Of a stretch of 64,000 bases of DNA, positions 22,238 through 59,568 are shown piece by piece. The position numbers and the translations under genes were made by a program. The notes under the pieces are model-generated. The model was given only the letters and a program-made list of their open reading frames with translations. It was not told the DNA's origin and did not search any database. The stretch spans positions 124,001 to 188,000 of IMG/VR virus record IMGVR_UViG_3300033388_007730, one strand, 5' to 3'. Each line of letters opens with the position of its first letter. The stretch's first letter is position 1.

Positions 22238-22951
22238 ATGGAAGATACTATTATTATAGGAATGTCTGGTAAGAAACAATCTGGTAAAACTCTTTCTTGC
22301 GAAGATATTCAGAGAAAATATGGTCTATCACAATCTGCCAATTATCCTGTTACAACTATTTCTGCTACAGTAGCTCTATATAGTTTTGCTGATATGCTTA
22401 AACAAAAAGTATGTATGGATACTATGGGATTAACATATGAGCAATGTAATGGAACTAATGAACAAAAGAGCACTCCTACCAAATATAAATGGGAAAATTT
22501 ACCACGACAGATAAGATATGATAATAAATTGGGATCTAAATATGCATCTAATGGAGAAGTGTATCAACACATCTTACCAGAAGGATTTATGACTGCTAGA
22601 GAGATTTTACAGATAGTTGGGACAGACATATTTAGAAAGTATTTTGATGATGATATTTGGGTGAATGCTACTTTCAGAAAAATAGAGAAAGAGAAACCTA
22701 AAGTAGCAATTATTACAGATGCCAGGTTTCCAGGTGAGATCGACGCAATAATGAATAATGGTGGTTGTGTAATTCGTCTGTTAAGAGATGTCTGCGAAAG
22801 TGATTTTCATGAAAGTGAAACAGCATTAGATGATTATGATTTTACAAAGTGGGGAAATAGAGTTTGTATTATTGATAATCAACATATGAGTATAGAAGAA
22901 AAAAATGTTGTTGTATTTAAGTATCTAGAGGGAATAATCAAATGTCAATAA
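22238..22951 (+). CDS. Deoxynucleoside monophosphate kinase (phage type)
   Basis: SGKKQSGKT, SFADMLK, TAREILQIVGTD, IITDARF, HESE. Confidence 0.85.
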   Translation: MEDTIIIGMSGKKQSGKTLSCEDIQRKYGLSQSANYPVTTISATVALYSFADMLKQKVCMDTMGLTYEQCNGTNEQKSTPTKYKWENLPRQIRYDNKLGSKYASNGEVYQHILPEGFMTAREILQIVGTDIFRKYFDDDIWVNATFRKIEKEKPKVAIITDARFPGEIDAIMNNGGCVIRLLRDVCESDFHESETALDDYDFTKWGNRVCIIDNQHMSIEEKNVVVFKYLEGIIKCQ

Positions 22952-25714: not shown

Positions 25715-26434
25715 GTGAATATGGATAAATCCAAGAATGATGGAAAAATCAGTAACTTGGATTATCAGGGTTTAGTAGATATAGTGAGAAGTGGCAGAAA
25801 TAAGAAGCAGAATCAAGCATATAATGAAATAGAAAATAGGATAAGACCAAAGATATATTTTATTATAAGGCAATTTTATATACCAGGATGTAATTATGAT
25901 GATATTTTACAAGAGGCATTATTCGCTTTAAGATATAAAGCTATTCCGGATTATGATGGTAGTCGTGGCAGAGGCGATACCATTTATCCATTTGATAATT
26001 TTGCAGTTCTTTGTATAAGAAGACATTTATCTACATTATTGAAATCTAGCTTCCAAAATAAAAGAAAAGCACTAAATACAAGTTTGTCCTTAGACCAAGA
26101 TAGAAATAATGTTTCAGATGATAGTTTATTTTTATCAGATATAATTCCGAGAACGGAAGGTAGTGTCGTAGGTGATTTGGGAGAAAAAGAATATTATCAA
26201 AAACTATTTAGCAGCTTATACGCAGAGTTGTCTATATTAGAGAAAAGAGTATTTAGTTTATATTCTAAAAGATATTCTTATGGTGAAATTTCTATAAAGA
26301 TAAATAAATATTACAGGAAAAATAAGATAAAGAAAAAGACGAATATTAAATCCATAGATAATGCTCTTTCGAGGATAAAACAAAAAGCAAAAGAAGTTTA
26401 TGAGAGATATGGATTAGAGGAAGAGAATGAGTAA
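25715..26434 (+). CDS. Sigma-70 family factor, SigH/Spo0H-like
   Basis: DDILQEA, FAVLCIRRHL, ALNTSLSLD, LSILEKRV, SYGEIS, KSIDNALSRIKQK. Confidence 0.85.
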   Translation: MNMDKSKNDGKISNLDYQGLVDIVRSGRNKKQNQAYNEIENRIRPKIYFIIRQFYIPGCNYDDILQEALFALRYKAIPDYDGSRGRGDTIYPFDNFAVLCIRRHLSTLLKSSFQNKRKALNTSLSLDQDRNNVSDDSLFLSDIIPRTEGSVVGDLGEKEYYQKLFSSLYAELSILEKRVFSLYSKRYSYGEISIKINKYYRKNKIKKKTNIKSIDNALSRIKQKAKEVYERYGLEEENE

Positions 26435-27557: not shown

Positions 27558-28823
27558 ATGAAGTTTAAAATTAATGCAGGAGAGTTCGTTAGGTCTTTAA
27601 ATGCCACTTTTGATGTAGCTACAAAATGCATTGCGCCAGGTGTTGATACAGAGAATATGATAACTATTAAATCAGATAAAGATAAGATAGTGGCAACATC
27701 TTATGGTGGAAGTGCCAGTGTTATTACTAAAATAAGTAATGATTTTTCTACGGAGATGTCTTATGAGAGTGAAGAATCTGGTGAGGCTACATTCAATGCA
27801 ATTATAATGATGAAATCATTACAGGTGTTCAAGGGATCTGATATCAACGTTGGACTAGACTCTAATCAAGTAATTCTTTCTCTTTGCGATGATGAGGATT
27901 TTATACAATGTGTTCCTACATACGATGGTTCTATATCTATTCCCCCAGTTGCTGATAAATTCACAAAAGAATTATCTGTTAATAGAGAAATTTTGATTGA
28001 AGGTATAAAAAAGGTTCAATTTGCTGTTGGATTTGCAGAAACACAAAGAAAATATTTATGTCTGATTCTAAGAACTACAAAAACAGGTATGAGATTTATA
28101 GCTGGTTCTGGTGGGGAATTTGCGATATCTGATATTACAGGAAAGGGTATATCTACTGGTAAAGGGGAGATTATTTTTCCTCATTTAAATTTATCTAATA
28201 TAACTGCTATACTATCCAATTCATCTGATAAAAATGTAGAAATTAAATGCGCTAAGAAAAATGATGCTAATAATATCCCAGCGCAAATAGTTTTAAAACT
28301 TAAACATTCTACTATATGTTTGTTTAAGATAGATGCAGCTATCAATTATCCAGATATTGATTCTGTGTTAGACTTTGATTATCCTAATAAGATTAGCAGT
28401 AACATTCTTGAGTGGAAAAGGTCAATAGCAGGAATTGATGCTGCTGATTTAGGGAATAAAGGATCAGACAAAGTTCCTAATACGGAAGTAAAGATTGATA
28501 AGAAGAATGAAATACTTCGTATTGAGACAAAGGGAGAATTAAAGTCTAAAAGTAAAGTATGTATTAAGAGTGGTGATAGCTCGATATCTGATAAGGAACC
28601 TTGGTTCAAGTGTAATTCTAAATATCTTAAAAACATAACTACCAAGTGTGGCATAGATAGTGGAGACATAGTAATCAACTTTGAGAACCAGCAGCCTCCT
28701 ACTGGCGTGAATGGCAAGTCTCATAGTATAAAACCTATTCTAATTAATTTTCCTGATAATGTTAATGCTGGTAAAAGTACTACTGAGAGTTTTAAGTTAT
28801 TTTTCATTGCTTCAACACTATAA
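27558..28823 (+). CDS. dnaN: Divergent DNA polymerase III beta sliding clamp
   Basis: MKFKIN start, LIEGIKKVQFAV, NYPDIDSVL, FKCNSKYL, C-terminal KPIL; lies near dnaX and holA. Confidence 0.7.
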   Translation: MKFKINAGEFVRSLNATFDVATKCIAPGVDTENMITIKSDKDKIVATSYGGSASVITKISNDFSTEMSYESEESGEATFNAIIMMKSLQVFKGSDINVGLDSNQVILSLCDDEDFIQCVPTYDGSISIPPVADKFTKELSVNREILIEGIKKVQFAVGFAETQRKYLCLILRTTKTGMRFIAGSGGEFAISDITGKGISTGKGEIIFPHLNLSNITAILSNSSDKNVEIKCAKKNDANNIPAQIVLKLKHSTICLFKIDAAINYPDIDSVLDFDYPNKISSNILEWKRSIAGIDAADLGNKGSDKVPNTEVKIDKKNEILRIETKGELKSKSKVCIKSGDSSISDKEPWFKCNSKYLKNITTKCGIDSGDIVINFENQQPPTGVNGKSHSIKPILINFPDNVNAGKSTTESFKLFFIASTL

Positions 28824-28833
28824 TCAGGATAAT

Positions 28834-30006
28834 ATGAAAAGAATATTTTTATTAGAAGGTTGTTGGTTCTATCGTAATGATGCTCTTTCTAAATTGAAAG
28901 AGGTTGTTGGGGATCATGACTTATATTCTTTTGATAACAAATGTAGTTATGAGTATGTTAAACAAATTATAATGGAGTTATCTTGTTTCGGCAATCGTAA
29001 GTTAATTATTATAAATGAATTGCCATTTGTTAAAGCTCCTAATAAATCTCAAGCTAAGACAAAAGTGACTAATTATTTTCAGAAATTGATTCCAAAAATG
29101 CCAGATGGTAGTATTGTTGTTTTTAATGGTTGTATATCTGAAAGAAATAAGAAGTTTAAAGCTGTTGTCAAGGAACACGGTAAAATATATTCTTCCGAAA
29201 AGAAGAAGAATAAGAATGAGGCTACTAAATTTGTAGTTGGTTTTTTTGAGGGAATTAATAAAGAAATATCATTTGATGATGCATTTATTATAGCTAATTC
29301 TTTGAATTTAGATGTTGATACAGTTGATATGGATAATTTAATTCTGCTGTGCTATAAGGTAAGAGATTATATTGGGGTTAAGAAGAAAGTATCTAATGCT
29401 GATATATTGTTAGTGTGTAATCAGTCCAGAGAGTTCGTGACCTGGAACTTGTTTAATAGTTTTGACGATAAGGATTTTTGTCATGCTATGGAGTTATTGA
29501 ATATACTGTTGAATTCTGCTAAGAGTGTAGAGGGTGAGATAATTAAGTTGATGGCTAGTATCAGGTGGAAGTATAATTTGTTGTTTATGGCTAAGGATGG
29601 TGTTTTTCATGAAATGTCAAAAAAGGAGATAGTTGATAAAATCTCGAAATTAAATAAAATGGAAAGAAGTGGTAGAGGGAAAAAGATTAAAATGAATCTT
29701 AAAGAAGAGAGTGGGAAGACGACTCCTGCCTATTCTAATGCTATGATTAATTCTGTTTTTAATGGTAGAAATGGAAGAAAACCATCATTGTCTTGTTATA
29801 CGCATGATCAATTGATTCTAATTAATTACGCTATAAATAAGTCACTTATAAAGGTTAGATCTGGATGTACAAAGCATGAAATACTTATACCGATAGAGTT
29901 TTTGTTTTTAACTATTTGCGGCAAAATTAAAAAAATAGAGTCTTTGAGAATTTTAGAGAGTAAGAATTTGATAACTTTAGAGGATTATTATGACATCTCT
30001 TGCTGA
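28834..30006 (+). CDS. holA: DNA polymerase III delta subunit-like
   Basis: ELSCFGNRKLIII (cf. SLF..RKLV), VTWNLFNSF...AMELL helical domain; follows dnaN. Confidence 0.65.
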   Translation: MKRIFLLEGCWFYRNDALSKLKEVVGDHDLYSFDNKCSYEYVKQIIMELSCFGNRKLIIINELPFVKAPNKSQAKTKVTNYFQKLIPKMPDGSIVVFNGCISERNKKFKAVVKEHGKIYSSEKKKNKNEATKFVVGFFEGINKEISFDDAFIIANSLNLDVDTVDMDNLILLCYKVRDYIGVKKKVSNADILLVCNQSREFVTWNLFNSFDDKDFCHAMELLNILLNSAKSVEGEIIKLMASIRWKYNLLFMAKDGVFHEMSKKEIVDKISKLNKMERSGRGKKIKMNLKEESGKTTPAYSNAMINSVFNGRNGRKPSLSCYTHDQLILINYAINKSLIKVRSGCTKHEILIPIEFLFLTICGKIKKIESLRILESKNLITLEDYYDISC

Positions 30007-37012: not shown

Positions 37013-37714
37013 ATGAAGCGATTGAAGGTTACTCATTTCCGATCAGATCCTGCTTATTGTGTGGCAGGAGCTTGTTCGGTTGTTGCCAACTATTATAATC
37101 CCGAAATAGATTATAATTTTGTAAAAAAAGAAGCATATAAAGTATCAAAAGATATAGCAGAAATAGGATTAGATAGTGGTCAAATGGGGTTACTTCTTAA
37201 TAGATTAGGATTTTATAAGGTTACTTTAGTTTCTAGTGTTATGCATTGTTTCGATTATTCTTGGCGAAATTATGGGAAAAAAAGACTGTTAAGAGAACTA
37301 GAAACTGCGACAAAAAAGAAAAAAGACGCAGGAGCAAGAGCAGAAATAAGAAGTATTTATAAATGGTACAAACAAAGTGATTTTGATAACAATATTATAA
37401 TAAGTTATGATTTTGGCAAGTATATAAGGCAATATCTTAATAAAGGAAAACCACTTATTCTCACTTTTAATTGGACTATGTTTTTTAAATTTGAAAAACA
37501 GAACAGCAAAGAAGAAGAAGATCCTATTAATGGTAATTATGAAGAACATGCCGTGGTAGCTAATGGTTATGATGATAAAGGAGTCTGGATAGTAGATTCT
37601 CATCATCAATATTATAAGTACAAAAGAAAAAAGTATAGAAGAGGATTCTATAAAATTTCTTGGGAAAATTTAATGACAATAATGGGAGAAGGAGATCTCA
37701 TTTTGCCAGAATAA
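37013..37714 (+). CDS. Papain-fold (C39-like) cysteine peptidase
   Basis: AYCVAGAC, GKPLIL, HAVVANGYDDKGVWIVDS. Confidence 0.75.
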   Translation: MKRLKVTHFRSDPAYCVAGACSVVANYYNPEIDYNFVKKEAYKVSKDIAEIGLDSGQMGLLLNRLGFYKVTLVSSVMHCFDYSWRNYGKKRLLRELETATKKKKDAGARAEIRSIYKWYKQSDFDNNIIISYDFGKYIRQYLNKGKPLILTFNWTMFFKFEKQNSKEEEDPINGNYEEHAVVANGYDDKGVWIVDSHHQYYKYKRKKYRRGFYKISWENLMTIMGEGDLILPE

Positions 37715-41012: not shown

Positions 41013-41405
41013 ATGAATTTTAAAGATATAATAAAAAAATATAGAGACAGGAATAAAAGCACAATATCTTCTGACAATGTGTCTCATGAGATGAATGCCA
41101 TTGTGCTTTATTCAACGTCTAATGCTCTATTTGATTTTAATGGTGTTATGATTGATGATGTTATGTCTTATGGCAAATCTAAGGGATACAACATAGATAA
41201 AATTGTTTTTCTTACCTCATATGATATAGAATTTACTGATGAGAATAAAGGTGTTAAAAAAGTAGACGATAATTCAATTAGGATTAGTCAGAATTATAGG
41301 ATGAAAAGTGATGCCAAAATAAGTATTATAGAAGAAGATGGAAAAGTAATTGCCAGGGTTTTTATGGGATCTTATATTATTGTAGGTAAAATACGTGAAA
41401 AATAA
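41013..41405 (+). CDS. Hypothetical protein
   Basis: 130-aa ORF overlapping the kinase start. Confidence 0.55.
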   Translation: MNFKDIIKKYRDRNKSTISSDNVSHEMNAIVLYSTSNALFDFNGVMIDDVMSYGKSKGYNIDKIVFLTSYDIEFTDENKGVKKVDDNSIRISQNYRMKSDAKISIIEEDGKVIARVFMGSYIIVGKIREK

Positions 41406-42861
41406 AATATCAAAAAAACGGTGGTTTTCTGAGGTAGTTCTGTATAATATGCGGGAGTCTATAATAATTACGAATGTCGATGGAGTAATAATTTATGTGA
41501 ACAAAGCAACAGAAAAATTATTTGGTTATACTGAAAAAGAAATGATAAATCAGAAACCAATAATGGTTAATGCTGAACCTGATGCAGAGAAAATCCAGGA
41601 ATCTATTTTAGAGGCTATGCTATGTGATGGGGAATGGAAAGGGCAGTTGCTTAATAGGAAAAAAAATGGTGATTTATTCACAGTTGAATTAACAATATGT
41701 CTTCTAAAAGATCTATATGATAACTTAGTTGGTTTTATAGGATATCAAAAAGATGTGACAAAAGCACTTAAGGCATCCAAGAAGATAAAAGAGAGTGAAG
41801 AGAAGTTTAGAAAAATTTTTCAAAATTCTCCTATGGGTATGCACTTGTATCAATTAAACATGGATGATGAGTTAGTTTTAATAGACTCTAATCCTGCTGC
41901 TGATGATTTTACAGGTATTAACACTGTTGATTTTATCGGAAAAACTCTCGAAGAAGCTTTTCCAGTTTTAATCGGTACAGAGATTCATGAAAGATACAAA
42001 ATGGCAGCTTCTAAAGGTATCTCTTGGAATACATCTTCTTTTACATACAAAGATGAAAGAATAAATGGTATTTATGATATATGGGCATATCAAATTTCAC
42101 GTAATCGTGTATTAGTACAGTTTGTTGAAGTAGTTAAGAGAGAACACGTTGAAGAGGAATTAAGAAATAGAAATCAAGAGTTAGAACAATTCGCATATGT
42201 AGCTTCTCATGACCTACAAGAACCATTGAGAGTAGTATCTAATTATTGTGAGATGTTGAGTGATAAATGCAAAACTTGTCCAAGAAGAGATAAAGATACT
42301 GAAAAGTGGTTGGAATATATAACGGAAGCTATTGATAGAATGAAAAATTTAATAAGGGAGTTATTGGATTTTTCTAGGGTAGGAAGAAAAGATAAATCAT
42401 TTGAGAGTTGTAATATAGGAGACATAATAGAAGATGTTAAAGATGATTTCAAGATATTGATAAAAGAGACTGATGCTGTTATAAAAGTAGAAGAGAACAT
42501 GCCATCAATAAATTGTATCGAATTCAGAATTAGACAATTATTTTATAATTTGATAAGTAATGCTATAAAATTTAGGGGAAAGAAAAAACCGCATATAGAT
42601 ATAAGCTTTTATAAAGAAGATGACGAATATGTATTTTGTGTTAAAGATAATGGGATAGGAATTTCACCAAAATATTTTGATAGAATCTTTGGAATATTTA
42701 AGAGATTGTATTCTAGAGAAGAATATCCTGGTACAGGAATAGGTCTTGCTTTATGTAAGAAAATAGTAGAAACTCATAATGGCAGAATATGGGTTGATTC
42801 TAAAGAGAATAAAGGGGCTTCTTTTTATTTTACCCTTTCTACAGTATTAGAAAGTGATTAA
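41395..42861 (+). CDS. Cytoplasmic PAS-PAS sensor histidine kinase
   Basis: Two PAS domains; H box FAYVASHDLQEPLR; N box NLISNAIKF; G1 DNGIGI; G2 GTGIGLALC. Confidence 0.93.
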   Translation: MKNKISKKRWFSEVVLYNMRESIIITNVDGVIIYVNKATEKLFGYTEKEMINQKPIMVNAEPDAEKIQESILEAMLCDGEWKGQLLNRKKNGDLFTVELTICLLKDLYDNLVGFIGYQKDVTKALKASKKIKESEEKFRKIFQNSPMGMHLYQLNMDDELVLIDSNPAADDFTGINTVDFIGKTLEEAFPVLIGTEIHERYKMAASKGISWNTSSFTYKDERINGIYDIWAYQISRNRVLVQFVEVVKREHVEEELRNRNQELEQFAYVASHDLQEPLRVVSNYCEMLSDKCKTCPRRDKDTEKWLEYITEAIDRMKNLIRELLDFSRVGRKDKSFESCNIGDIIEDVKDDFKILIKETDAVIKVEENMPSINCIEFRIRQLFYNLISNAIKFRGKKKPHIDISFYKEDDEYVFCVKDNGIGISPKYFDRIFGIFKRLYSREEYPGTGIGLALCKKIVETHNGRIWVDSKENKGASFYFTLSTVLESD

Positions 42862-45142: not shown

Positions 45143-45185
45143 AATATCCCCCAACATTCATTGTGATATTGGGGGATATTTTTTT
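45143..45185. terminator. Probable bidirectional terminator between convergent genes
   Basis: AATATCCCCCAA / TTGGGGGATATT stem followed by a T-tract. Confidence 0.75.
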
Positions 45186-45597
45186 ATATAGCTTTAAGTG
45201 TTTTTACTCTTTTTCTGCCATAAGTGGCACATCTTATGGCTCTTGTTAAGTCTTCATGTTTAACTTCATCTTTGATAAGGAAATCTTTTATTCCTAATGA
45301 GAATGCTTTTATTCCTAGACTATAATCTTCTAATCCGGTAAGAATTATTATAGGTATTTTTTTATTTTTTTGTTCTAAGAATTTATTAACTTCATTAATA
45401 GTATCTAATCCGTCTGTTTCAGGAAGGACTAAATCTAATATAATAACATCATATTCATTTTTTCCCAATTTTTCTAATGCTGCTTTTAAACAATCGCTTT
45501 CATCAGCAGTCATATCTGGAATTAGATTGGTTTGATTAATCCTTGTTATTGCTATATCTCTGTCTTCTTTACTATCATCTATAACTAGTACTTTCAT
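45184..45597 (-). CDS. Single-domain response regulator
   Basis: VLVIDDS, ILDLVLPETDG (phospho-Asp), IILTG, FLIK. Confidence 0.9.
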   Translation of the reverse strand: MKVLVIDDSKEDRDIAITRINQTNLIPDMTADESDCLKAALEKLGKNEYDVIILDLVLPETDGLDTINEVNKFLEQKNKKIPIIILTGLEDYSLGIKAFSLGIKDFLIKDEVKHEDLTRAIRCATYGRKRVKTLKAI

Positions 45598-45607
45598 TTT
45601 ACTCTCA

Positions 45608-46081
45608 CTATTTTATGTTGTCATTTTTTATGATATATAAATTTCCAGCGTTTGGGAGAACGGATGTTTTAAGCCAATACTCACCCATAGTTGCTATTTT
45701 TTCAAATAAGTTTTTAGTGCTAAAACTTTTTACTATGTATGAATTAGCATAAGCATCATATGATTTTTGGATATCTTCTTCTTCGCTAGAGTTACTGAAC
45801 ATTATAACTGGAATTACTTTATATTTTTTATCATTTTTTATTTTTTTTAATAGTTCATAACCGCCTATTTTTGGGAGATTTATATCTAGTATTATAAGAT
45901 CAGGGGTTTTTGCTTCTTTAAATTTATTTTTCTTAAATATGTATTCTAGGGCAGTTTGTCCATTTGAAATGTTAGTTATCTCTAATTTTATATCAGGGAT
46001 TCTGTGGAGAGCAGTATCTAATAAGGTGAAATCTGGCTCGTTATCTTCTATAGAAAGTATATTAAATGTAGTGTCTGTCAT
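45608..46081 (-). CDS. Single-domain response regulator, Rcp1-like
   Basis: IEDNEPD, PDLIILDINLP, IPVIMFSNS, ANSYIVK, EYWL. Confidence 0.9.
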   Translation of the reverse strand: MTDTTFNILSIEDNEPDFTLLDTALHRIPDIKLEITNISNGQTALEYIFKKNKFKEAKTPDLIILDINLPKIGGYELLKKIKNDKKYKVIPVIMFSNSSEEEDIQKSYDAYANSYIVKSFSTKNLFEKIATMGEYWLKTSVLPNAGNLYIIKNDNIK

Positions 46082-47132: not shown

Positions 47133-48221
47133 ATGAAAATATTAGATTTTTCTAATAGTCGTAGAAGTTTTTTAATGTCCAAAAGAATGCCTGCTAAAGA
47201 TTATTTTTTCTTTTTAAACGGAGAGAAAATGAATTTTTTTAGAGAAAGGGAATCTCATGTTGAAGATATTAAATATTTTTGTCCAGAAATCCTTAAGAAC
47301 AAAATAAATACAATGAATGAAATAGAGAGACATTCTGATGCTGATATTTTGTTATTAAACGATATGACAATTATAAATAAAAAACATAGTAATGATATAG
47401 TTAATTTTTTAAATAAATTTAAAGGCAAAATAGTTGCTATAGGTTATTCTTGGGATTTTGTTATTGATTGCCCTCAAAATAATAATCAACTAAAAAGAGA
47501 AATCGATGCTCTAGCCGTAGCTGGTCCATCTTCTTTATGTAAAGTGCAAGCATTTCCTTATAGCCAATCAGAATTAGATGTTCTGCATAGAGATGTCAAC
47601 AATGTTTTTGTAAATAAAAATGATGTTATAAAAAAATATAAATTGCCTAGTAATAAAAAATATGTATTAATAACAGTTGCATTTCAGAGAGAACATGAAA
47701 ATTATCTTAAAGATCTTAGACTATTTGAAAAAAAAATAGTGAAATTCATTAAATATATAAAAAATTATGATAACATTTATACTATATGGAAGATAAAAGA
47801 AAAACAAAAAGATTTTGTTAAAATTGTAAAAATTATTTTAAAAAGTCAAAAATTTGATAATTTTTTTGTATTCTCAAATGTTTACGATGACGGGTATGAA
47901 AGGTGGCATCGTCGTTTTATTTCTCCAATTAATGAATTATCTTCTGTGATATCTTGTCATATTAATTTATCTTCAATATCTTTTTCACATATAGAAATAG
48001 CAGTTGCTGGCATACCAACTTATTCTTTTAATGGAGATAATGTTGAAATGCCTTATAATCCAGAATGTATTAAAGACATGTTTAATACATTTTGGGATAA
48101 AAAGTCTATTAGCAATTGTTATGGAAATAAAGATATTTGTATAGATAGGTCTTTAATAATGCCTATTATTGATAGAAATTTTTTCACTGACAACCTAATA
48201 AAAAATCTATTGACATTATAG
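47133..48221 (+). CDS. Hypothetical protein, possibly GT-B fold
   Basis: 362-aa very AT-rich ORF; SHIEIAVAGIP resembles EA...G.P. Confidence 0.45.
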   Translation: MKILDFSNSRRSFLMSKRMPAKDYFFFLNGEKMNFFRERESHVEDIKYFCPEILKNKINTMNEIERHSDADILLLNDMTIINKKHSNDIVNFLNKFKGKIVAIGYSWDFVIDCPQNNNQLKREIDALAVAGPSSLCKVQAFPYSQSELDVLHRDVNNVFVNKNDVIKKYKLPSNKKYVLITVAFQREHENYLKDLRLFEKKIVKFIKYIKNYDNIYTIWKIKEKQKDFVKIVKIILKSQKFDNFFVFSNVYDDGYERWHRRFISPINELSSVISCHINLSSISFSHIEIAVAGIPTYSFNGDNVEMPYNPECIKDMFNTFWDKKSISNCYGNKDICIDRSLIMPIIDRNFFTDNLIKNLLTL

Positions 48222-48237
48222 AAATATGTGGTATAAT
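48210..48237 (+). promoter_or_regulatory. Sigma70 promoter, probably giving a leaderless transcript
   Basis: TTGACA-N16-TATAAT ending 7 nt before ATG 48245; no RBS. Confidence 0.65.
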
Positions 48238-48244
48238 ATCTGAT

Positions 48245-48571
48245 ATGAGTGATACGTATGGAATAAATGAAGGAATATCTCGTTTTGAGATAATGGATCT
48301 CTGGACTGATGAAGAAAGAGAAAAATTAGAGTCAGATAGAGAAGAAAAAAGAGAAAAGTTACAATCAGACAGAGAAGAAGCAGGTTGTTGCGAGTATTGT
48401 GGATCTAAAAATAACCCACATTGGGTTCCATCTATGACGAGATATCATTGGGATAAGTACAAAAAATTGGAAGATCCTAACAGAGACTTATTTTATTGTG
48501 ATGAGTGTGAAGAGTATCATATGGAGTATTGGAATAACATGTGGGAAGAGTATAGTGCTTCGAGGTGGTGA
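48245..48571 (+). CDS. Small zinc-finger protein with RFEIMDL motif
   Basis: CEYCG...CDEC. Confidence 0.65.
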   Translation: MSDTYGINEGISRFEIMDLWTDEEREKLESDREEKREKLQSDREEAGCCEYCGSKNNPHWVPSMTRYHWDKYKKLEDPNRDLFYCDECEEYHMEYWNNMWEEYSASRW

Positions 48572-48572
48572 A

Positions 48573-48791
48573 ATGGATAAAATAATAGTTGTACATGATA
48601 AAAATTCAGAATATGATGCATCACCGTTTCATGATGTTCCATATGAGAAATTAAATTTTTCTGTTAAAATTAATGCTCATTTGATAGTATATGTTTCTGA
48701 ACAGAATCAAGAAGTGACTATAATTAAAAATAGATGGGGATCGAATGATGATCCTAAGATAATTAGTTTTTTGAAAATTTTTACGAGATAG
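48573..48791 (+). CDS. Hypothetical protein; possible -1 frameshift extension to 48868
   Basis: GAGGTGG RBS; IIKNRWG; T6 run at 48767-48772. Confidence 0.55.
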   Translation: MDKIIVVHDKNSEYDASPFHDVPYEKLNFSVKINAHLIVYVSEQNQEVTIIKNRWGSNDDPKIISFLKIFTR

Positions 48792-48864
48792 AAAATTCTC
48801 CTCCGATTGAAGAAGAGATAGAACCAGAAATTCCAGTTAATAGATTTGAGATGATGGATTTTGA

Positions 48865-49227
48865 ATGAGTAAACATAATGAACAATTTAGATTTGATATA
48901 ATAGATTTTGGAGATGATATAGAAAATGCTTATCAGGCAAAATTAGAGAGAGAAGAGAAAAAGAGAGTAGAGAAAGTTGTTAGATTAGCAACGGATTGTA
49001 AACGCAAGGTAGAAGAAAAAGGAGTTTGTGAGGGTTGTGGCGGGAAAGAGAAATTGAGATGGGTTTGTAACGAAGAAGCCTACTTATGTTATGATTGTTA
49101 TTATAAAGGTATGCGACAGTGGGAAGATCTTTGTTGCTCTCATGGTCGTAGCGCCGAAGATATTCCTGGTTTTATATATGATGATGAATGGGAGTATCTT
49201 TGGGAAAAAGAGCAAAAAAAAACTTAA
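48865..49227 (+). CDS. Small zinc-finger protein with RFDIIDF motif
   Basis: CEGCG...CYDC; architecture similar to 48245. Confidence 0.65.
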   Translation: MSKHNEQFRFDIIDFGDDIENAYQAKLEREEKKRVEKVVRLATDCKRKVEEKGVCEGCGGKEKLRWVCNEEAYLCYDCYYKGMRQWEDLCCSHGRSAEDIPGFIYDDEWEYLWEKEQKKT

Positions 49228-49280
49228 AAAGAGTTAAGTATACTTGACGCATTTGAAGTATTTGAAAAGGATCTAGGAAT

Positions 49281-49511
49281 ATGAGTAAAATAGAAGAAAT
49301 AGAAAAAGAGAATGTAGCTTTAAGAGGATGTATAGATTCTGCTTTAATGACATTAGCAGATTATGATGGATACAGAGAAGCAGAAGGTTTGATGGGACTT
49401 ATAGATGATGTTGTTGAGACTTTACAATCTGGTTGTTCAAATAGAATAGTAGATTTTGAGAGCAGGAAAGTTTGTCCTTTGTGTTTTCAAAGATTAAAGA
49501 AAGAAGAGTAA
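49281..49511 (+). CDS. Hypothetical protein
   Basis: DYDGY...GLMGLID, C-terminal CPLC. Confidence 0.6.
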   Translation: MSKIEEIEKENVALRGCIDSALMTLADYDGYREAEGLMGLIDDVVETLQSGCSNRIVDFESRKVCPLCFQRLKKEE

Positions 49512-49512
49512 A

Positions 49513-50559
49513 ATGTTACTTACAAGAGAACAATTTAGAAATGGAGTACTTGAGAGAGATAACAATCAGTGTGTTATCTGCGGAAGCTCTACAGATCTTG
49601 TGGCACATCACATTATGGAGAGAAGATTATTTGAAGATGGTGGATACTACATTTCAAATGGTAGCACACTCTGCGAAGAACATCATATTCTTGCTGAGCA
49701 AACTGTTTTGTCTTGTGAAGAGATTAGAGAAGCAGCAGGAATTACAGATATTGTTTTACCTCCTCATCTGTATCAAGATACTAAGTATGAAAAATGGAGT
49801 AACATCATACTCTCTGATGGTCGTAGGTTAAAAGGTGAGTTGTTCTTTGATGAGTCTGTTCAGAAGATACTTAAAGCAGGCGATGTATTAAAGCATTTTT
49901 GCAAATATGTCAAATATCCAAGAACCTGGCATCTCTCACACAGTCATAAGGTTCATCGTAATGATATGCAGTTAGATTCTAATAAACAGTTTAATGGCAA
50001 GAAAGTAGTAGTCACTATTAAGATGGATGGTGAAAACACCACAATGTATAATAACTATCTTCATGCTCGTTCAGTTGATAGTGCTAATCACCCTACAAGA
50101 GGTTGGGTTAAAAGAATACATGCTGAGATGGGATGGAATATTCCTGAAGGTTGGAGAGTCTGTGCTGAGAATATGTATGCTAAACACACTGTTGAATATG
50201 AGAACCTTGAATCTTATCTTCTTGTTTTTTCTATATGGAATGAAAAGAATGAGTGTTTGTCATGGGATGATACTATTGAATGGGCAGAACTGTTAGAACT
50301 TTCTATGACTCCTGTTCTTTATGTGGGAGAATGGGATGAAAAAAAGATTCATTCTTTATGCCCAAAAGAATATAATGGAGATAAAGTTGAAGGATATGTG
50401 GTCCGTTTATTTGAATCTTTTACATATGGGGATTTCAGAAAATCAGTAGCCAAATATGTGAAGCCAGAATTTGCAGATCAACTCGGAACTGGGAGCAGCC
50501 ACTGGAAGTATAAAAAGATAATTCCCAACAAATTACAAAAGAAAGTTGTTGAAAAGTGA
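49513..50559 (+). CDS. HNH domain fused to an ATP-dependent RNA ligase
   Basis: RDNNQCVICG..AHHI..NGSTLCEEHH; KYPRTWHL, KMDGEN (motif I), CAEN, EGYVVR, AKYV. Confidence 0.85.
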   Translation: MLLTREQFRNGVLERDNNQCVICGSSTDLVAHHIMERRLFEDGGYYISNGSTLCEEHHILAEQTVLSCEEIREAAGITDIVLPPHLYQDTKYEKWSNIILSDGRRLKGELFFDESVQKILKAGDVLKHFCKYVKYPRTWHLSHSHKVHRNDMQLDSNKQFNGKKVVVTIKMDGENTTMYNNYLHARSVDSANHPTRGWVKRIHAEMGWNIPEGWRVCAENMYAKHTVEYENLESYLLVFSIWNEKNECLSWDDTIEWAELLELSMTPVLYVGEWDEKKIHSLCPKEYNGDKVEGYVVRLFESFTYGDFRKSVAKYVKPEFADQLGTGSSHWKYKKIIPNKLQKKVVEK

Positions 50560-50577
50560 TTAAAGCTATGTTAGAAT
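50549..50577 (+). promoter_or_regulatory. AAAGTGA-box promoter overlapping a gene junction
   Basis: TTGAAAAGTGATTAAAGCTATGTTAGAAT. Confidence 0.55.
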
Positions 50578-50813
50578 TAGAGCTAGTGTATCCTTATAAC
50601 AGGTCAATGGGTACTTTAGCTGACTTTTGTGGTTTATGGGATTGTGGCATACTTGGTGGCGGGACTAATAGTGTAAAAGCTTTAATATCCATGCCTTCTT
50701 TTCATTTTAAAAAGATATTTGGTACAAATCCAAGAGTTGGAAATTATGGTATCCCTAGTGGAATGGAAAAATTTATAGCAGGTGTGAAAGTTAAAGAAAT
50801 AATAACAATTTAA
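50556..50813 (+). CDS. Hypothetical protein
   Basis: 85-aa ORF; start uncertain because it overlaps a promoter match. Confidence 0.5.
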   Translation: MIKAMLELELVYPYNRSMGTLADFCGLWDCGILGGGTNSVKALISMPSFHFKKIFGTNPRVGNYGIPSGMEKFIAGVKVKEIITI

Positions 50814-50824
50814 GAGAGAAAGAA

Positions 50825-51430
50825 ATGATTAAGATTAAAGATCCAAAAAGAATTATTACAGCAAAGAGAAAAAAGAACATAATCTGTTGGCTCGATTTGG
50901 ATGGCGTAATTTGCTATTGGTTAAAATCAGCTGCAAACACTCTGGGAATAGATTTGAGAAGGTCTGATATTAGACAACAGCTTAAAGATGGAAAGAGAAT
51001 GGAAAGTTTTGTAGGTGGTGATTCTAAAATGTGGACTAAGATTGATGCTGAAGGCGAAGCCTGGTGGGAAAATATAGAAAAACTTCCTTGGGCTGATGAC
51101 TTAATTAATCTTCTTAAGAAAGAAACAAAAGATTTATCATTTCTAAGTTCTCCTTCTAATAGTCCTACTTGTTATTCCGGAAAAATAAAATGGGTACAAA
51201 AGAATTACCCAAAGATGGATAGAGATGTATTTATTGGATGTAAAAAATATAGATGTGCTAGTTCTGATTCTCTTCTTATTGATGATACCGCAAAAGAGTG
51301 TAAGAAGTTTAGAGAAAATGGTGGGCATGTTTTTGAGTGGCCTAATGTTCTATCTATTATTGATGGAGAAATTAAGATAGAAGATGTATTAAGTGATTTG
51401 GCTAATGAAATAAATAAAATAAGATTATAA
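50825..51430 (+). CDS. HAD-family 5'(3')-deoxyribonucleotidase-like
   Basis: LDLDGVI, LSSP, GKIKWV, LLIDD. Confidence 0.8.
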   Translation: MIKIKDPKRIITAKRKKNIICWLDLDGVICYWLKSAANTLGIDLRRSDIRQQLKDGKRMESFVGGDSKMWTKIDAEGEAWWENIEKLPWADDLINLLKKETKDLSFLSSPSNSPTCYSGKIKWVQKNYPKMDRDVFIGCKKYRCASSDSLLIDDTAKECKKFRENGGHVFEWPNVLSIIDGEIKIEDVLSDLANEINKIRL

Positions 51431-51441
51431 GGGATGGATTT

Positions 51442-51756
51442 ATGAAGTATGTATTAGCTGGAAAATCAGAAACTTTTAATTTGTATTGTCATATAAATAA
51501 ACAGCAACCTGATAAAGATGTAATATATGCGAAAACAGAGAAAATATTTAATGACACAACTGACATTGATACGATAGTATTATTGTCTGGATGGTGGGGA
51601 AAAAGTTGGGCTAAAAAGGCTCTTAAAGGTATTCTTGAAGTATATCCTTGTATAGATATAGAGTATTTGGATGGGCAATTTGGAGAGAAAGAGAGAGAGG
51701 GTATTTCTGCTCAGAAGAGTACACTTACCCGATTTGATTTAATAGATTTGGAGTAA
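51442..51756 (+). CDS. Hypothetical protein with C-terminal RFDLIDLE
   Basis: 104-aa ORF with RBS. Confidence 0.6.
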   Translation: MKYVLAGKSETFNLYCHINKQQPDKDVIYAKTEKIFNDTTDIDTIVLLSGWWGKSWAKKALKGILEVYPCIDIEYLDGQFGEKEREGISAQKSTLTRFDLIDLE

Positions 51757-57195: not shown

Positions 57196-59568
57196 ATGGA
57201 AGATATAAATATCAAATCATTATTACAAGGTGGAATTCGTAAAGATCCAGAAGATGATAGAGATTTTATTTTTACAACACCACATATTCCTGATCATACT
57301 GTCTTGGGAAGTGCTGATTCTATTCCATTAAAAATAGATCATTCTAATAAGATGGGTTCGGTTAAGTTTCAAGGTGCGTTAGGATGCCATGATATTAGAA
57401 CAGAAATACTTACAGAAAAAGGTTGGAAACTATTTAAAGATTTGGATAAAGAAGAAAAAGTAGCTACCGTTAATCCTAATACCCATGAAATTGAATATCA
57501 AGAGCCAATTAATTATTTAGAATATGATTATGAAGGAGATATGTATTATTTTCACCATAAAAGTGGATTAGATGCTATGGTTACTCCTAATCATAAGATG
57601 TATGTCAAGAAATGGGATAATAAAAATATGACATTAAAAGAAGAATTTGAATTCATTGAAGCACAAAATATGGGTTGGTATTCTGGATTGTTGACAAAAA
57701 TTGATTGGGATGGGATCTCTCCCAAAACAATGAAAATGCCAGATGTTGAGATAGGACAAAGAAATGGAAGCAAAAAACAATCTATAAGAATAGGTAAAGA
57801 AATTGATACTACTAATTTCATTACATTTTTGGGATTATATTTAGCAGAGGGCTGTTGTTATCGTCCTGAGGGTAGTGGATCTTACAGAATTGAGATCGCC
57901 GCTAGTGACAATAATGATAGGAAAAATGAAGTTATTGAAATTATTGATGATTTGCCGTATAAATATACTATTTATCATGATAGGATAACAATATGGAATA
58001 AATCTTTATATACATTTCTTAAGCCTTTTGGGAATGTTTATACTAAGTCAGTACCAAGATTTGTTATGGATTTGAATAAAAAGGATATCGCTGCATTTAT
58101 GTATGGTTATTATTTAGGAGATGGATCTTTTCATGATAATGGGGCAAGGACAGGGTATTCGGTATCTGAACATTTAATTGATGATCTTCAAGAACTATCT
58201 TTGAAAATAGGGGTATATAGTAGGAAAAAAAGTAGATCACCTAGAATTGCATATATTAAAGGTAGAAAAATTTTTGGTAAAGAAAGTTATGAACTTCATG
58301 AAAGACAAATAGATACGAAGTTGTCGATAGATAGAAATAAATATTCATCCAAAGTTCCATATAATAATAAAGTATATTGTGTAGAAGTCCCTAATCACAT
58401 ACTTATTACTAGAAGGGGTGGTTGTATTCTAATTTCTGGCAATTCGTGCGTAGCGTTTGCAGCTTGTGCTTTAAAAGAGTGGCAAGAAACAATAGAACAT
58501 GAAAAGGAAGTTTTGGCAGGGAAAAAAGATCATAGAGAAGGTAAAGAATATAATTTGTCTGAACAGTGGATTTATTGGAATTGTAAAAAAATAGATCCAT
58601 GGCCTAATTCTGAAGGAACAAATCTGAGATCAGCTATGAGAGTATTAAATAAGATTGGAGTTCCTACCGAACAAGCTTGGGGTTACACTGATGATAAGGT
58701 GAACATTGGTGAACCTGAAAGCTGGGCATATATGATAGCAAGGTGGAATTTAATAGGGTCTTATTGGAGAATATCAGGATTAGATCAAATTAAAAAAGCA
58801 TTGATCGAGAGTCCTATTATTATTGGGATGGCTTGTTTTAGAGAAATGTATGGTAATTTAGAACATGGTTTAATACCTTATCCTGCTAATCCTGGAGAAG
58901 TAATGTCTCATCATGCTGTTTGTGTTGTTGGTTATGATGAAGAGAAAAAACTCTTAAAATTTAAAAATAGTTGGTCTAAGTTCTGGGGAGATGTTGGTTA
59001 TGGATATATACCTTATGATTATGTAAGAGATTTTGTATGGGATGCGTGGATTGCTAGAGATATTAGTGTAACTCATGAAATGCTTGAAGGTACTAGATTA
59101 TTGGTAGGTGCAGATGTACCAACAGTAATAGAGATAGCTGAGACACCACTTATACAAAAAGATACAGAAGAGAATTTTTCTTTTGTAGGATTTAAGTATC
59201 CTTCTCTTTTAGATACTTTTTCTATTATTAAAGATATTTTTGGAGTTCCAGAAATAGAGATATTTAGAGCTTCTAAAAAGGTGGGAGTTAAATTAGAAGA
59301 TTCTTCATCTATTAACTTATTCTGTAAAAAATATTTTGCTGAGTTTAGAAAAGAATCTGTAAAGAAATATGGATTTGAAGTCGATGTTATTAAAGTGGAT
59401 GATGAATATCCAATTATTGGTATTTGTTTGTGTGAAAAAGAAATTAGTGATAAATTTGATGAAAATCAGATAAAGATAGAAGATGTAATGAAAAAAGTGG
59501 TTGGCATGAGAGATATATTGGCTCTTGGCAAAGATATAATAATTTACAATGGTGTGAGAAAATATTAA
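57196..59568 (+). CDS. Papain-family (C1A) cysteine protease containing an intein
   Basis: Spliced motif QGALGSCVAFA, LSEQWIY, HAVCVVGYD, KNSWSKFWGDVGYG. Confidence 0.9.
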   Translation: MEDINIKSLLQGGIRKDPEDDRDFIFTTPHIPDHTVLGSADSIPLKIDHSNKMGSVKFQGALGCHDIRTEILTEKGWKLFKDLDKEEKVATVNPNTHEIEYQEPINYLEYDYEGDMYYFHHKSGLDAMVTPNHKMYVKKWDNKNMTLKEEFEFIEAQNMGWYSGLLTKIDWDGISPKTMKMPDVEIGQRNGSKKQSIRIGKEIDTTNFITFLGLYLAEGCCYRPEGSGSYRIEIAASDNNDRKNEVIEIIDDLPYKYTIYHDRITIWNKSLYTFLKPFGNVYTKSVPRFVMDLNKKDIAAFMYGYYLGDGSFHDNGARTGYSVSEHLIDDLQELSLKIGVYSRKKSRSPRIAYIKGRKIFGKESYELHERQIDTKLSIDRNKYSSKVPYNNKVYCVEVPNHILITRRGGCILISGNSCVAFAACALKEWQETIEHEKEVLAGKKDHREGKEYNLSEQWIYWNCKKIDPWPNSEGTNLRSAMRVLNKIGVPTEQAWGYTDDKVNIGEPESWAYMIARWNLIGSYWRISGLDQIKKALIESPIIIGMACFREMYGNLEHGLIPYPANPGEVMSHHAVCVVGYDEEKKLLKFKNSWSKFWGDVGYGYIPYDYVRDFVWDAWIARDISVTHEMLEGTRLLVGADVPTVIEIAETPLIQKDTEENFSFVGFKYPSLLDTFSIIKDIFGVPEIEIFRASKKVGVKLEDSSSINLFCKKYFAEFRKESVKKYGFEVDVIKVDDEYPIIGICLCEKEISDKFDENQIKIEDVMKKVVGMRDILALGKDIIIYNGVRKY
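57385..58443 (+). mobile_element. Intein (353 aa) with LAGLIDADG endonuclease at the protease active site
   Basis: QGALG|CHDIRTEILT ... VYCVEVPNH...ISGN|SCVAF; VTPNHKM; FLGLYLAEG and YYLGDG. Confidence 0.93.

Follow-up and report, generated by a model that had tools for sequence, protein, structure and literature searches.

Several systems are known in which one short peptide brings unrelated proteins to a common partner. In phages of the T4 family, the DNA polymerase gp43 and the proteins gp33 and gp55 bind the sliding clamp gp45 through a short hydrophobic and acidic peptide at their extreme C-terminus, which is joined to the body of the protein by a divergent unstructured linker and can be swapped between these functionally unrelated proteins (PMC2988020). 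The polymerase of phage RB69 ends in LFDMFDF, a pattern of the form h-F-D-h-h-D-h (h, hydrophobic). In bacteria, five- or six-residue linear motifs (QL[S/D]LF, QxxLF or QLxLxL, with positions 1, 4 and 5 of the pentapeptide being the most important) direct many different clients to the hydrophobic cleft between domains II and III of the DnaN beta clamp, and they lie in flexible N-terminal (Hda, QLSLPL), internal or C-terminal (PolC, QLSLF; Pol IV) segments (PMC12309361). Tethering peptides of AAA+ adaptors and substrates, such as the XB peptide of SspB with ClpX, the VIM and SHP motifs with p97/Cdc48 and the MIM helices of ESCRT-III with the MIT domain of Vps4, are likewise short terminal peptides on flexible linkers that are shared by many proteins and dock on the N-domain of an ATPase. 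Finally, the cargo-loading peptides of encapsulins and bacterial microcompartments and the capsid-targeting sequence of T4 act as portable address labels, consisting of a terminal amphipathic helix plus a linker, on unrelated cargo.

We examined a 64,000-nucleotide stretch (referred to here as the window; positions 124,001 to 188,000 of IMG/VR record IMGVR_UViG_3300033388_007730) of a 219,188-bp contig of a huge phage. A sequence-only reading had pointed to a recurrent peptide, RF(D/E)hhD(L/F), at the ends of four small proteins and had inferred a shared docking motif or degron that targets probable early proteins to one partner, such as the sliding clamp, RNA polymerase or a protease adaptor. 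The relevant features, in window coordinates, were as follows.

22942 to 25647 (+): DnaX clamp-loader ATPase gene, interrupted by an intein with a LAGLIDADG domain (context).
25715 to 26434 (+): SigH-like sigma factor gene, lying between dnaX and dnaN-holA (context).
27558 to 28823 (+): divergent DnaN-type sliding clamp, 421 aa, the favored but unproven receptor.
28759 to 30006 (+): clamp-loader delta subunit (HolA), which reads ELSCF at the position of E. coli delta QAMSLF.
48210 to 48237 (+): perfect sigma70-type promoter (TTGACA, 16 nt, TGgTATAAT; 12/12 matches with an extended -10 TG), whose -10 box ends 7 nt before the ATG at 48245, so the mRNA is predicted to be leaderless or nearly so.
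48245 to 48571 (+): 108-aa zinc-ribbon protein (CxxC...CxxC) with the N-terminal tag RFEIMDL (48281 to 48301, residues 13 to 19), followed by an acidic stretch and a long charged helix.
48573 to 48791 (+): 72-aa ORF of no recognized family, ending in TAG and containing the run T6 (48767 to 48772) inside the heptamer T_TTT_TTG (48767 to 48773).
48767 to 48868 (+): -1-frame tail of 33 codons, without a start codon of its own, encoding the linker PPIEEEIEPEIPVN plus the tag RFEMMDF-E (tag at 48842 to 48862, one residue before a TGA).
48865 to 49227 (+): 120-aa zinc-ribbon paralogue with the N-terminal tag RFDIIDF (48889 to 48909, residues 9 to 15).
51442 to 51756 (+): 104-aa protein with a predicted small Rossmann-like alpha/beta domain (residues 1 to 77), a predicted disordered linker (residues 78 to 96) and the C-terminal tag RFDLIDL-E (51730 to 51750, residues 97 to 103).

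All four peptides were present where the sequence-only reading had placed them, and the observation is therefore confirmed, although its extent was underestimated: there are about 20 to 25 carriers in this contig, and 35 to 52 in each large relative. A six-frame scan of the whole contig with RF[DE][ILMV][ILMV]D[LFIM] returned 11 hits, all on the positive strand, 8 of which were 0 to 2 residues before a stop. A relaxed pattern applied to 286 crudely called genes returned 24 hits, 19 within 3 residues of a C-terminus and 4 N-terminal, whereas 300 residue shuffles gave a mean of 3.0 hits in total and 0.07 at the C-terminus. Thus, the terminal bias and the excess over chance, which had been named beforehand as a test of the motif, were both found.

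We next evaluated how common the tag is in related phages. A DNA-level pattern returned 48, 28 and 17 hits in the relatives designated G001 to G003, as opposed to 0 to 1 for a reversed-pattern control. Position-specific scoring identified 52 C-terminal tags in a 548-kb phage (G1) and 35 in a 351-kb phage (G2), with the consensus [ED]-P-I-x-[SND]-R-F-[ED]-I-L-D-L-COOH; STLTRFDLIDLE and PIxSRFEILDL are examples of tag peptides. The 106 carriers, 101 tagged at the C-terminus and 5 at the N-terminus, fell into 68 BLAST families, 48 of which were singletons and almost none of which contained a known domain. The exact tag pattern was found only in this phage clade within IMG/VR, but a looser form (h-D-h-h-[DEN]-h) survives in deeper relatives. 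None of the four motif strings searched for was found in the papers of the literature library.

The tag was invariant in orthologues that were only 45 to 49% identical. In eight homologues of the 104-aa protein, down to 45% identity, residues R97, F98, D99, D102 and L103 were invariant, and a putative gluzincin family keeps the tag in 8 to 9 phages. Orthologues of the 108-aa zinc-ribbon protein in L009 (a related locus), G1 and G2 keep an N-terminal R-F-E-h-h-h-F/L element with an invariant Arg; PHROG 12292 matches only the C-terminal half of this protein. The codons of the tag differ, as the sequence-only reading had stated: Arg was encoded by AGA 44 times, CGT 12, AGG 11, CGA 4, CGG 1 and CGC 1, close to genome-wide usage, so selection acts on the peptide. 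The 15 residues preceding the tag were enriched in Pro (1.75-fold) and Glu (1.66-fold). In two AlphaFold models, the tag was placed as a short helix on a disordered tail; for the 104-aa protein, AlphaFold2 gave pLDDT values of 82 to 87 for residues 1 to 77 and below 50 for residues 78 to 104, with a helix at 99 to 103.

The instance in a shifted frame is real, but it can be expressed only by a -1 shift or with one extra T in the run. Its positional homologue, L009:5220-5456, is one uninterrupted 78-aa ORF ending in EPEPITRFEMMDFE. Although a slippery heptamer is present, the downstream RNA was less structured than shuffled sequences (folding z-score of +1.74), and no stimulatory structure follows. 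The tail thus looks like a homopolymer frameshift rather than programmed recoding, with a miscount or mutation in the T6/T7 run being the more likely origin. The description of the carriers as probable early proteins was supported for one promoter only: among 29 near-consensus promoters in the contig, only that at 48210 to 48237 directly precedes a carrier.

Taken together, the interpretation offered by the sequence-only reading is partly supported. We are confident that the motif is a portable short linear docking tag, which we call the RF tag ([S/N/D]-R-F-[D/E]-h-h-D-h). It usually comprises the last 7 to 9 residues of the protein and, more rarely, lies within the first 30 or so, and it is predicted to form about two turns of an amphipathic, acidic helix at the end of a flexible linker rich in Pro, Glu, Asp and Lys. 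The analysis itself establishes that the tag is real, terminal, selected at the peptide level, predicted to sit on a disordered tail, conserved in orthologues and attached to at least 68 sequence families; the identity of its receptor, and binding to it, are inferred. In this view, the tag would tether dozens of unrelated, mostly small phage proteins to one common receptor, which we tentatively propose is the highly divergent beta clamp of the phage itself. R-F-[DE]-[IL]-[LM] would then stand for Q-L-[SD]-L-F, the tag would work like the interchangeable epitopes of gp43, gp33 and gp55, and a clamp loaded on phage DNA by the phage clamp loader would concentrate many accessory proteins there.

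The assignment of the clamp rests on sequence and synteny. The match to TIGR00663 (E of 6e-8, 31.9 bits) was below the curated cutoff of 137.65 bits, the Pfam DNA_pol3_beta hit was weak and the match to PDB DnaN had an E of 0.074; however, the gene lies next to holA and dnaX, and its orthologues carry PF00712 or PF02767. The clamp is thus DnaN-like and not the trimeric gp45/PCNA-like partner of the T4 epitopes.

Several circumstantial observations point to this clamp. Positions 1 to 5 of the tag match the bacterial consensus at positions 3 and 4, with conservative changes elsewhere and a matching hydrophobic pattern, and both N- and C-terminal placement are known for such motifs. Like the bacterial motifs, the tag lies in predicted flexible terminal segments of otherwise unrelated proteins, and, like the T4 epitopes, it is mostly a hydrophobic and acidic extreme C-terminus on a divergent, predicted unstructured linker that is shared by several proteins of one phage. 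The RB69 polymerase tail LFDMFDF has the same h-F-D-h-h-D-h pattern as RFDLMDL. The phage Pol III alpha subunits end in GADIFG, SVDMFEDLF or ETIDIFG, at roughly the position of E. coli alpha QADMF (in model coordinates), and this h-D-h-h(-x-D-L-h) tail resembles the tag in pattern, although these tails are not RF tags. Conserved tagged genes lie inside the replisome gene cluster, between dnaB-dnaG and dnaE, in all relatives. The divergent clamp family was found only in the tag-rich phages, whereas several of the more distant phages that share the AAA ATPase described below carry a more canonical DnaN (9 of the 19 searched) and show no tags in the approximately 20 kb around that gene; this co-occurrence is, however, confounded by shared ancestry.

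Other observations argue against the clamp. The strict bacterial consensus is not fulfilled, since Q1 and F5, among the most important residues, are replaced by R and by L or M, and neither the invariant D6-h7 nor the preference for the exact C-terminus is a feature of bacterial clamp-binding motifs. The alpha and delta subunits of the phage use more canonical motifs (ADIF, VDMF or IDIF in alpha; LSCF in delta, with EISCF in G1 and G2) rather than RF tags. No carrier has a recognizable DNA-related domain, and the carriers are not recognizable as replication or repair enzymes. The clamp evolves fast, with 31% identity between the genomes G0 and G1, while the tag is nearly invariant. Fifty or more clients for one clamp has no known precedent, and the 20 to 50 carriers per genome, the conserved Arg and the N-terminal copies also set the tag apart from the three T4 proteins. 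The single complex prediction, which combined the full phage AAA ATPase, clamp residues 136 to 421 and a carrier, scored ipSAE values of 0.00 and 0.17 relative to a mark of 0.32, which counts as no answer for either candidate receptor.

A less likely alternative is that the tag is a tether or degron for an AAA+ machine, docking carriers as substrates or adaptors onto the Cdc48/PAN-like AAA ATPase of the phage (55688 to 57346 in genome coordinates) or onto a host Clp, Lon or FtsH protease, so that carriers, or the targets they hold, would be unfolded or removed at a set time. Unfoldases read exposed terminal peptides on flexible linkers, and the tag has that form. The ATPase is well conserved (64 to 65% identity between G0, G1 and G2), its AAA domain matches Cdc48/p97 with an E of 2e-63, and its own C-terminus, [KR]-x-L-D-[LI], is conserved in more than 60 homologues and resembles the last residues of the tag (I-L-D-L). 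Tandem arrays of fast-evolving small proteins with variable heads and a constant tail also look like an adaptor family. On the other hand, this ATPase family is widespread in phages where no tags were found (about 70 IMG/VR loci and, by homology, cluster-O mycobacteriophages) and is therefore not sufficient. No ClpP, proteasome/HslV or Lon domain was found in G000 to G003, including the complete 548-kb relative, so a degron would need host proteases. The tag does not resemble known ClpX, ClpA or Lon degrons and has no sequence similarity to the XB, VIM/SHP or MIM motifs. The degron reading is neither supported nor excluded.

It is similarly unlikely, though possible, that the tag docks phage proteins onto a conserved host hub, such as the host beta clamp, RNA polymerase, the ribosome or SSB partners, as part of host takeover. 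The near-invariance of the tag, while phage proteins diverge to 30 to 50% identity, fits a slowly evolving host target, at least one carrier operon sits behind a perfect host-type sigma70 promoter, and the carriers are small proteins with no known relatives, as is typical of host-takeover proteins. However, the restriction of the exact pattern to this clade within IMG/VR and the conservation of tagged genes inside the phage replication module, rather than only in early regions, speak against it. SigH-like and SpoVS genes hint only loosely at a Firmicute host.

Still less likely is a cargo-targeting peptide that would load many small proteins into the huge capsid for co-injection, or into another phage-built compartment. 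A short terminal amphipathic helix on a poorly conserved linker, at either end of the protein, is the format of encapsulation peptides, huge capsids could hold many proteins, and large arrays of diverse small proteins would suit injected anti-defense cargo. However, the sequences are unrelated to those of the described peptides, no tag was found in the structural module (1 to 45 kb of the genome), conserved tagged genes lie among replication genes, and no shell or scaffold protein with a matching partner was identified. One degenerate carrier (SRASLIDID; 197218 to 197622 in genome coordinates) looks by eye like a membrane protein with hydrophobic N-terminal stretches, which does not fit capsid cargo. 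Lastly, although some carriers are paralogues (three families of six members each, and the MORN-like YDxxGN-repeat proteins), we consider chance, a DNA repeat or descent from one paralogous family to be refuted by the shuffling and reversed-pattern controls, the 68 unrelated families, the use of both AGR and CGN codons, and the conservation of a terminal tag while the linkers diverge.

A broader and doubtful possibility, which the data leave standing, is that huge phages of this clade use a genetically encoded address label, in which a single terminal peptide attached to more than 50 fast-evolving small proteins per genome, in at least 68 families and in tandem arrays, recruits them all to one phage-specific hub. 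The hub may be an orthogonal sliding clamp that marks replicating phage DNA as self and serves as a landing pad for transcription, anti-defense and takeover factors, or it may be an unfoldase or a compartment not yet recognized. Either would be a new organizing principle for the unannotated gene content of huge phages.

Most genes of huge phages have no known function, and a conserved terminal tag shared by 10% or so of the proteome gives an experimental handle on these proteins, since identification of the hub would at once place every tagged protein of unknown function in one pathway. The tag could also serve as a portable targeting peptide for engineering and as a search key for annotating related metagenomic phages. 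If the hub is the phage's own clamp, this would be by far the largest set of clamp clients known in a virus and would extend the T4 idea of the clamp as a mobile platform for transcription to a general recruitment system. If the hub is instead an unfoldase or a compartment, it would be a new phage protein-sorting system.

The window (bases 124001-188000) belongs to a single 219,188-bp contig with 31.6% G+C, a virus record rated about 44% complete and a fragment of a huge phage. The contig encodes DnaX with an intein, a divergent DnaN clamp, HolA, a split Pol III alpha with inteins, DnaB, DnaG, RecA, PcrA/UvrD, topoisomerase and SSB, together with a SigH-like sigma factor, IF3, a Cdc48-like AAA ATPase, Ro60, RNA ligases, ThyX, thioredoxin and many glycosyltransferases. 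No close relative was found among deposited phage genomes. An alternative genetic code was considered and rejected: TAA, TAG and TGA serve as stops 144, 48 and 39 times, respectively, no tRNA genes were found, and the standard code was used throughout.

Inteins or LAGLIDADG domains interrupt DnaX, Pol III alpha (encoded in pieces), PcrA/UvrD and a papain-like cysteine protease (window 22942-25647 and 57196-59568; L002:8674-11152 and L002:18969-, L002 being one of four carrier loci, L001-L004, outside the window). Many homologues of the AAA ATPase are also split by inteins. The phage further encodes a PAS histidine kinase and two receiver-domain proteins (window 41395-42861 and 45184-46081, minus strand), and elsewhere Ro60/TROVE, NADAR, GMP reductase, a CCA/poly(A) polymerase-HD protein and a C39-like peptidase (window 37013-37714).

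The sequence-only reading had placed a recurrent peptide at the ends of four small proteins, and all four instances were found where it had put them. The features concerned, in window coordinates, are as follows.

48210-48237, perfect promoter, TTGACA-16-TGgTATAAT
48245-48571, CxxC...CxxC zinc-ribbon protein with an N-terminal tag
48573-48791, ORF with a tag behind it in the -1 frame
48767-48868, the -1-frame tail carrying that tag
48865-49227, paralogous CxxC...CxxC zinc-ribbon protein with an N-terminal tag
51442-51756, ORF for a 104-aa protein with a C-terminal tag

The pattern extends across the genome. RF[DE][ILMV][ILMV]D[LFIM] occurs 11 times in the six-frame translation; all 11 are on the coding strand, and 8 lie 0-2 residues before a stop. 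A relaxed pattern found 24 matches in 286 crudely called genes, 19 of them within 3 residues of the C-terminus and 4 N-terminal, whereas shuffles gave a mean of 3.0 matches in total and 0.07 at the C-terminus. The carriers outside the window lie at genome positions 47.5-49.8 kb, 62.9-68.7 kb, 85-91.7 kb and 192.7-197.6 kb (loci L001-L004). One tagged repeat protein at genome 49236-49814 (L001:5236-5814) is split by a single in-frame TAG (49488-49490), while its orthologues in the 548- and 351-kb relatives introduced below are intact at 186-194 aa. This could be a nonsense mutation, an assembly error or read-through; TAG is otherwise a normal stop in 48 genes.

We asked whether carriers correlate with sigma70-type promoters, but only one of 29 near-consensus promoters directly precedes a carrier. 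At window 48210-48245, and also at genome 96723 and 185076 (window 61076), the -10 box of a perfect or near-perfect sigma70-type promoter ends only 7-8 nt before the ATG, so these mRNAs should be leaderless. The phage also encodes its own IF3 (genome 55136-55648), a factor that discriminates against leaderless starts. A recurrent promoter-like element, TTGAAAGTGA...N...TATAAT, lies directly upstream of genes including the clamp gene (genome 72771, 78948, 138447 [window 14447], 151518 [window 27518], 185076 [window 61076] and 210331) and may represent a phage-specific promoter class. The SigH-like sigma factor gene is embedded between dnaX and dnaN-holA (window 25715-26434), an arrangement that recalls the link between late transcription and the clamp in T4.

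We next examined relatives. The 104-aa protein has homologues down to 45-49% identity; in all eight, R97, F98, D99, D102 and L103 are invariant, while the preceding linker varies. A 386-kb ENA scaffold (L009) has 9 carriers in the syntenic 20 kb, one of which (L009:4879-5223) ends in a tandemly duplicated tag, RFELMDFELMDFE. Three IMG/VR contigs were scanned with the degenerate DNA pattern for the tag, which gave 48 hits in G001 (548 kb, rated 100% complete), 28 in G002 (351 kb) and 17 in G003 (298 kb). The reversed-pattern control gave 0-1 hits per strand in each contig.

Crude gene calling on the whole of G001 and G002 gave 52 and 35 C-terminal tags, respectively. The consensus is [ED]-P-I-x-[SND]-R-F-[ED]-I-L-D-L-COOH, and 34 of 42 and 24 of 25 strict tags end exactly at the stop codon. 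Many carriers sit in tandem arrays of 60-140-aa genes, for example at G001 136-153 kb. The 106 carriers in the three genomes fall into 68 BLAST families, 48 of them singletons, and their median length is about 100 aa, against 155-180 aa for all genes. Pfam, PHROGs and NCBIfam searches found nothing meaningful for about 40 carriers, the exceptions being DUF4116 repeats in one G002 carrier and PHROG 12292 for the zinc ribbon.

Codons within the tag follow genome-wide synonymous usage: Arg uses AGA, AGG and four CGN codons, and the codons for Leu, Ile, Asp and Glu all vary. Thus, the tag is not a DNA repeat, and selection acts on the peptide. The 15 residues before the tag are enriched in Pro, Glu, Asp and Lys and depleted in aromatic residues. 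AlphaFold2 models of two carriers agree with a disordered tail. The 51442-51756 protein is predicted to have a folded domain at residues 1-77 (pLDDT 82-87), a tail at 78-104 with pLDDT below 50 and a short helix at 99-103; the 268-aa HExxH protein is predicted to have a low-confidence linker at about residues 249-263, followed by a helix at 264-267. The [S/N/D]-x-x-[D/E] residues at the start of the tag fit a helix N-capping box, which we infer. Foldseek searches against the PDB found nothing significant for the 104-aa carrier, which has a generic small Rossmann-like predicted fold, and only weak hits for the HExxH carrier, all to gluzincin peptidases (collagenase, aureolysin and IrrE). The idea that the latter is a SprT/Spartan-like protease with a clamp motif is not supported.

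Two tagged families lie between dnaG and dnaE in every relative, and both keep a tag even in distant phages.

C-terminal tails seen in the two conserved tagged families
Putative gluzincin (HExxH...EEFAY): RFDLMDLD, RFDLLDL, RFDILDL, RFDYLDL, RFDLMDF, RYDFIEIEDEEE, RFNLLDL, SFDLMEF, DFDLMNLL, KFGMMDFGF
121-aa family: TRWDFLDIREE, TRWDILDL, NRFDILDL, TRLDYLDIESE, TRWDLIDVGEDMDA, TRADLLDIEIESE, DDFDYIDLSDDGK, SYDFLDLSE..

The ancestral core is therefore h-D-h-h-[D/E/N]-h near the C-terminus, and the Arg and the strict C-terminal position are features of the closer clade. An exact-pattern scan of IMG/VR found the canonical form only in this clade. A full-text literature search for four motif strings found no paper, and a search for huge phages with a C-terminal motif found nothing relevant. 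A second class of tails, acidic and aromatic, is present at genome 58021-59706, 71379-71663, 72820-73497 and 193714-194157: DnaB ends ..DEEDDWDF, a 94-aa protein next to dnaE ends ..EVDFDFS, a 225-aa protein ends ..EDFNPDW, and there is an SSB-tip-like ..EDVPF. These tails probably mediate other contacts within the replisome.

The instance in the shifted frame has no start codon of its own, and its tail (48767-48868) overlaps the end of ORF 48573-48791 only across TTTTTTGAAAATTTTTACGAGA. One extra T in the T6 run (48767-48772), or a -1 slip on T_TTT_TTG, would fuse the two into a tagged protein of about 100 aa. The positional homologue in L009 is a single 78-aa ORF with the same tail. No stimulatory structure was found, the downstream RNA being less structured than shuffled controls. 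A homopolymer miscount or a genuine frameshift mutation is therefore more likely than programmed recoding.

The anatomy of the tag is that of a short linear docking motif that sends many proteins to one receptor: it is terminal and modular, sits on a flexible linker and is conserved while the protein bodies are unrelated. We hold this view with high confidence, although docking is inferred from these observed sequence features and from the models rather than from binding data, and the identity of the receptor is a matter of inference alone. The earlier proposal of a shared docking motif is supported, but no partner is established.

We tentatively favor the phage's own beta clamp (window 27558-28823) as the receptor. 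Tag positions 1-5 (R-F-[DE]-[IL]-[LM]) parallel the bacterial clamp-binding consensus QL[S/D]LF, which is likewise found at N-termini (Hda), at C-termini (PolC) or internally (PMC12309361). The phage Pol III alpha is truncated just where E. coli alpha carries QADMF and ends ..GADIFG, ..SVDMFEDLF or ..ETIDIFG, while HolA has ELSCF or EISCF where E. coli delta has QAMSLF; the clamp therefore appears to accept h-[SD]-h-h ligands. T4 sets a phage precedent. Conserved tagged genes are embedded in the replisome gene cluster. Finally, the clamp of this clade is unusually divergent (421-437 aa, well below the TIGR00663 cutoff), and its family was found only in the tag-rich phages; 9 of the 19 more distant phages searched carry a more canonical DnaN, and none of them shows tags in the ~20 kb around the AAA gene. 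On the other hand, the strict consensus is not matched, and the D-h ending and the preference for the free C-terminus are not features of bacterial clamp-binding motifs. Fifty clients for one clamp has no precedent, the carriers show no DNA-related domains, the clamp evolves fast while the tag does not, and the co-occurrence is confounded by phylogeny. One complex prediction, with the full AAA ATPase, clamp residues 136-421 and the 51442-51756 carrier, scored ipSAE 0.00 and 0.17, below the mark, and speaks neither for nor against an interaction.

An AAA+ machine is a less likely receptor. The phage's Cdc48/PAN-like ATPase (L001:11688-13346, genome 55688-57346) is well conserved, has an uncharacterized 265-aa N-domain and always sits in the order helicase, 308-aa gene, IF3, AAA, 270-aa gene, dnaB, dnaG. 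Its own C-terminus, [KR]xLD[LI], is kept in more than 60 homologues and resembles the end of the tag. However, this family, which reaches cluster-O mycobacteriophages, is common in phages where we found no tags, weakening the case for it as the specific receptor. Domain searches for a phage-encoded protease partner found no ClpP, proteasome or Lon, and no chambered peptidase is encoded. A conserved host hub is a hypothetical and somewhat less likely receptor; a SpoVS homologue (genome 76524-76847) hints at a Firmicute-like host. A cargo-targeting peptide for the capsid or a compartment is doubtful: the format fits, but no tag lies in the structural module, and one apparent membrane protein, judged by eye from its hydrophobic N-terminal stretches, carries a degenerate tag. 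Chance, a DNA repeat and simple paralogy are excluded.

The observation of a recurrent terminal peptide is thus confirmed and greatly extended. Terminal hub-docking motifs are already known, and the tag is closest among them to clamp-binding epitopes; what is new is the unprecedented number and diversity of carriers, and none of the four motif strings searched was found in a paper.
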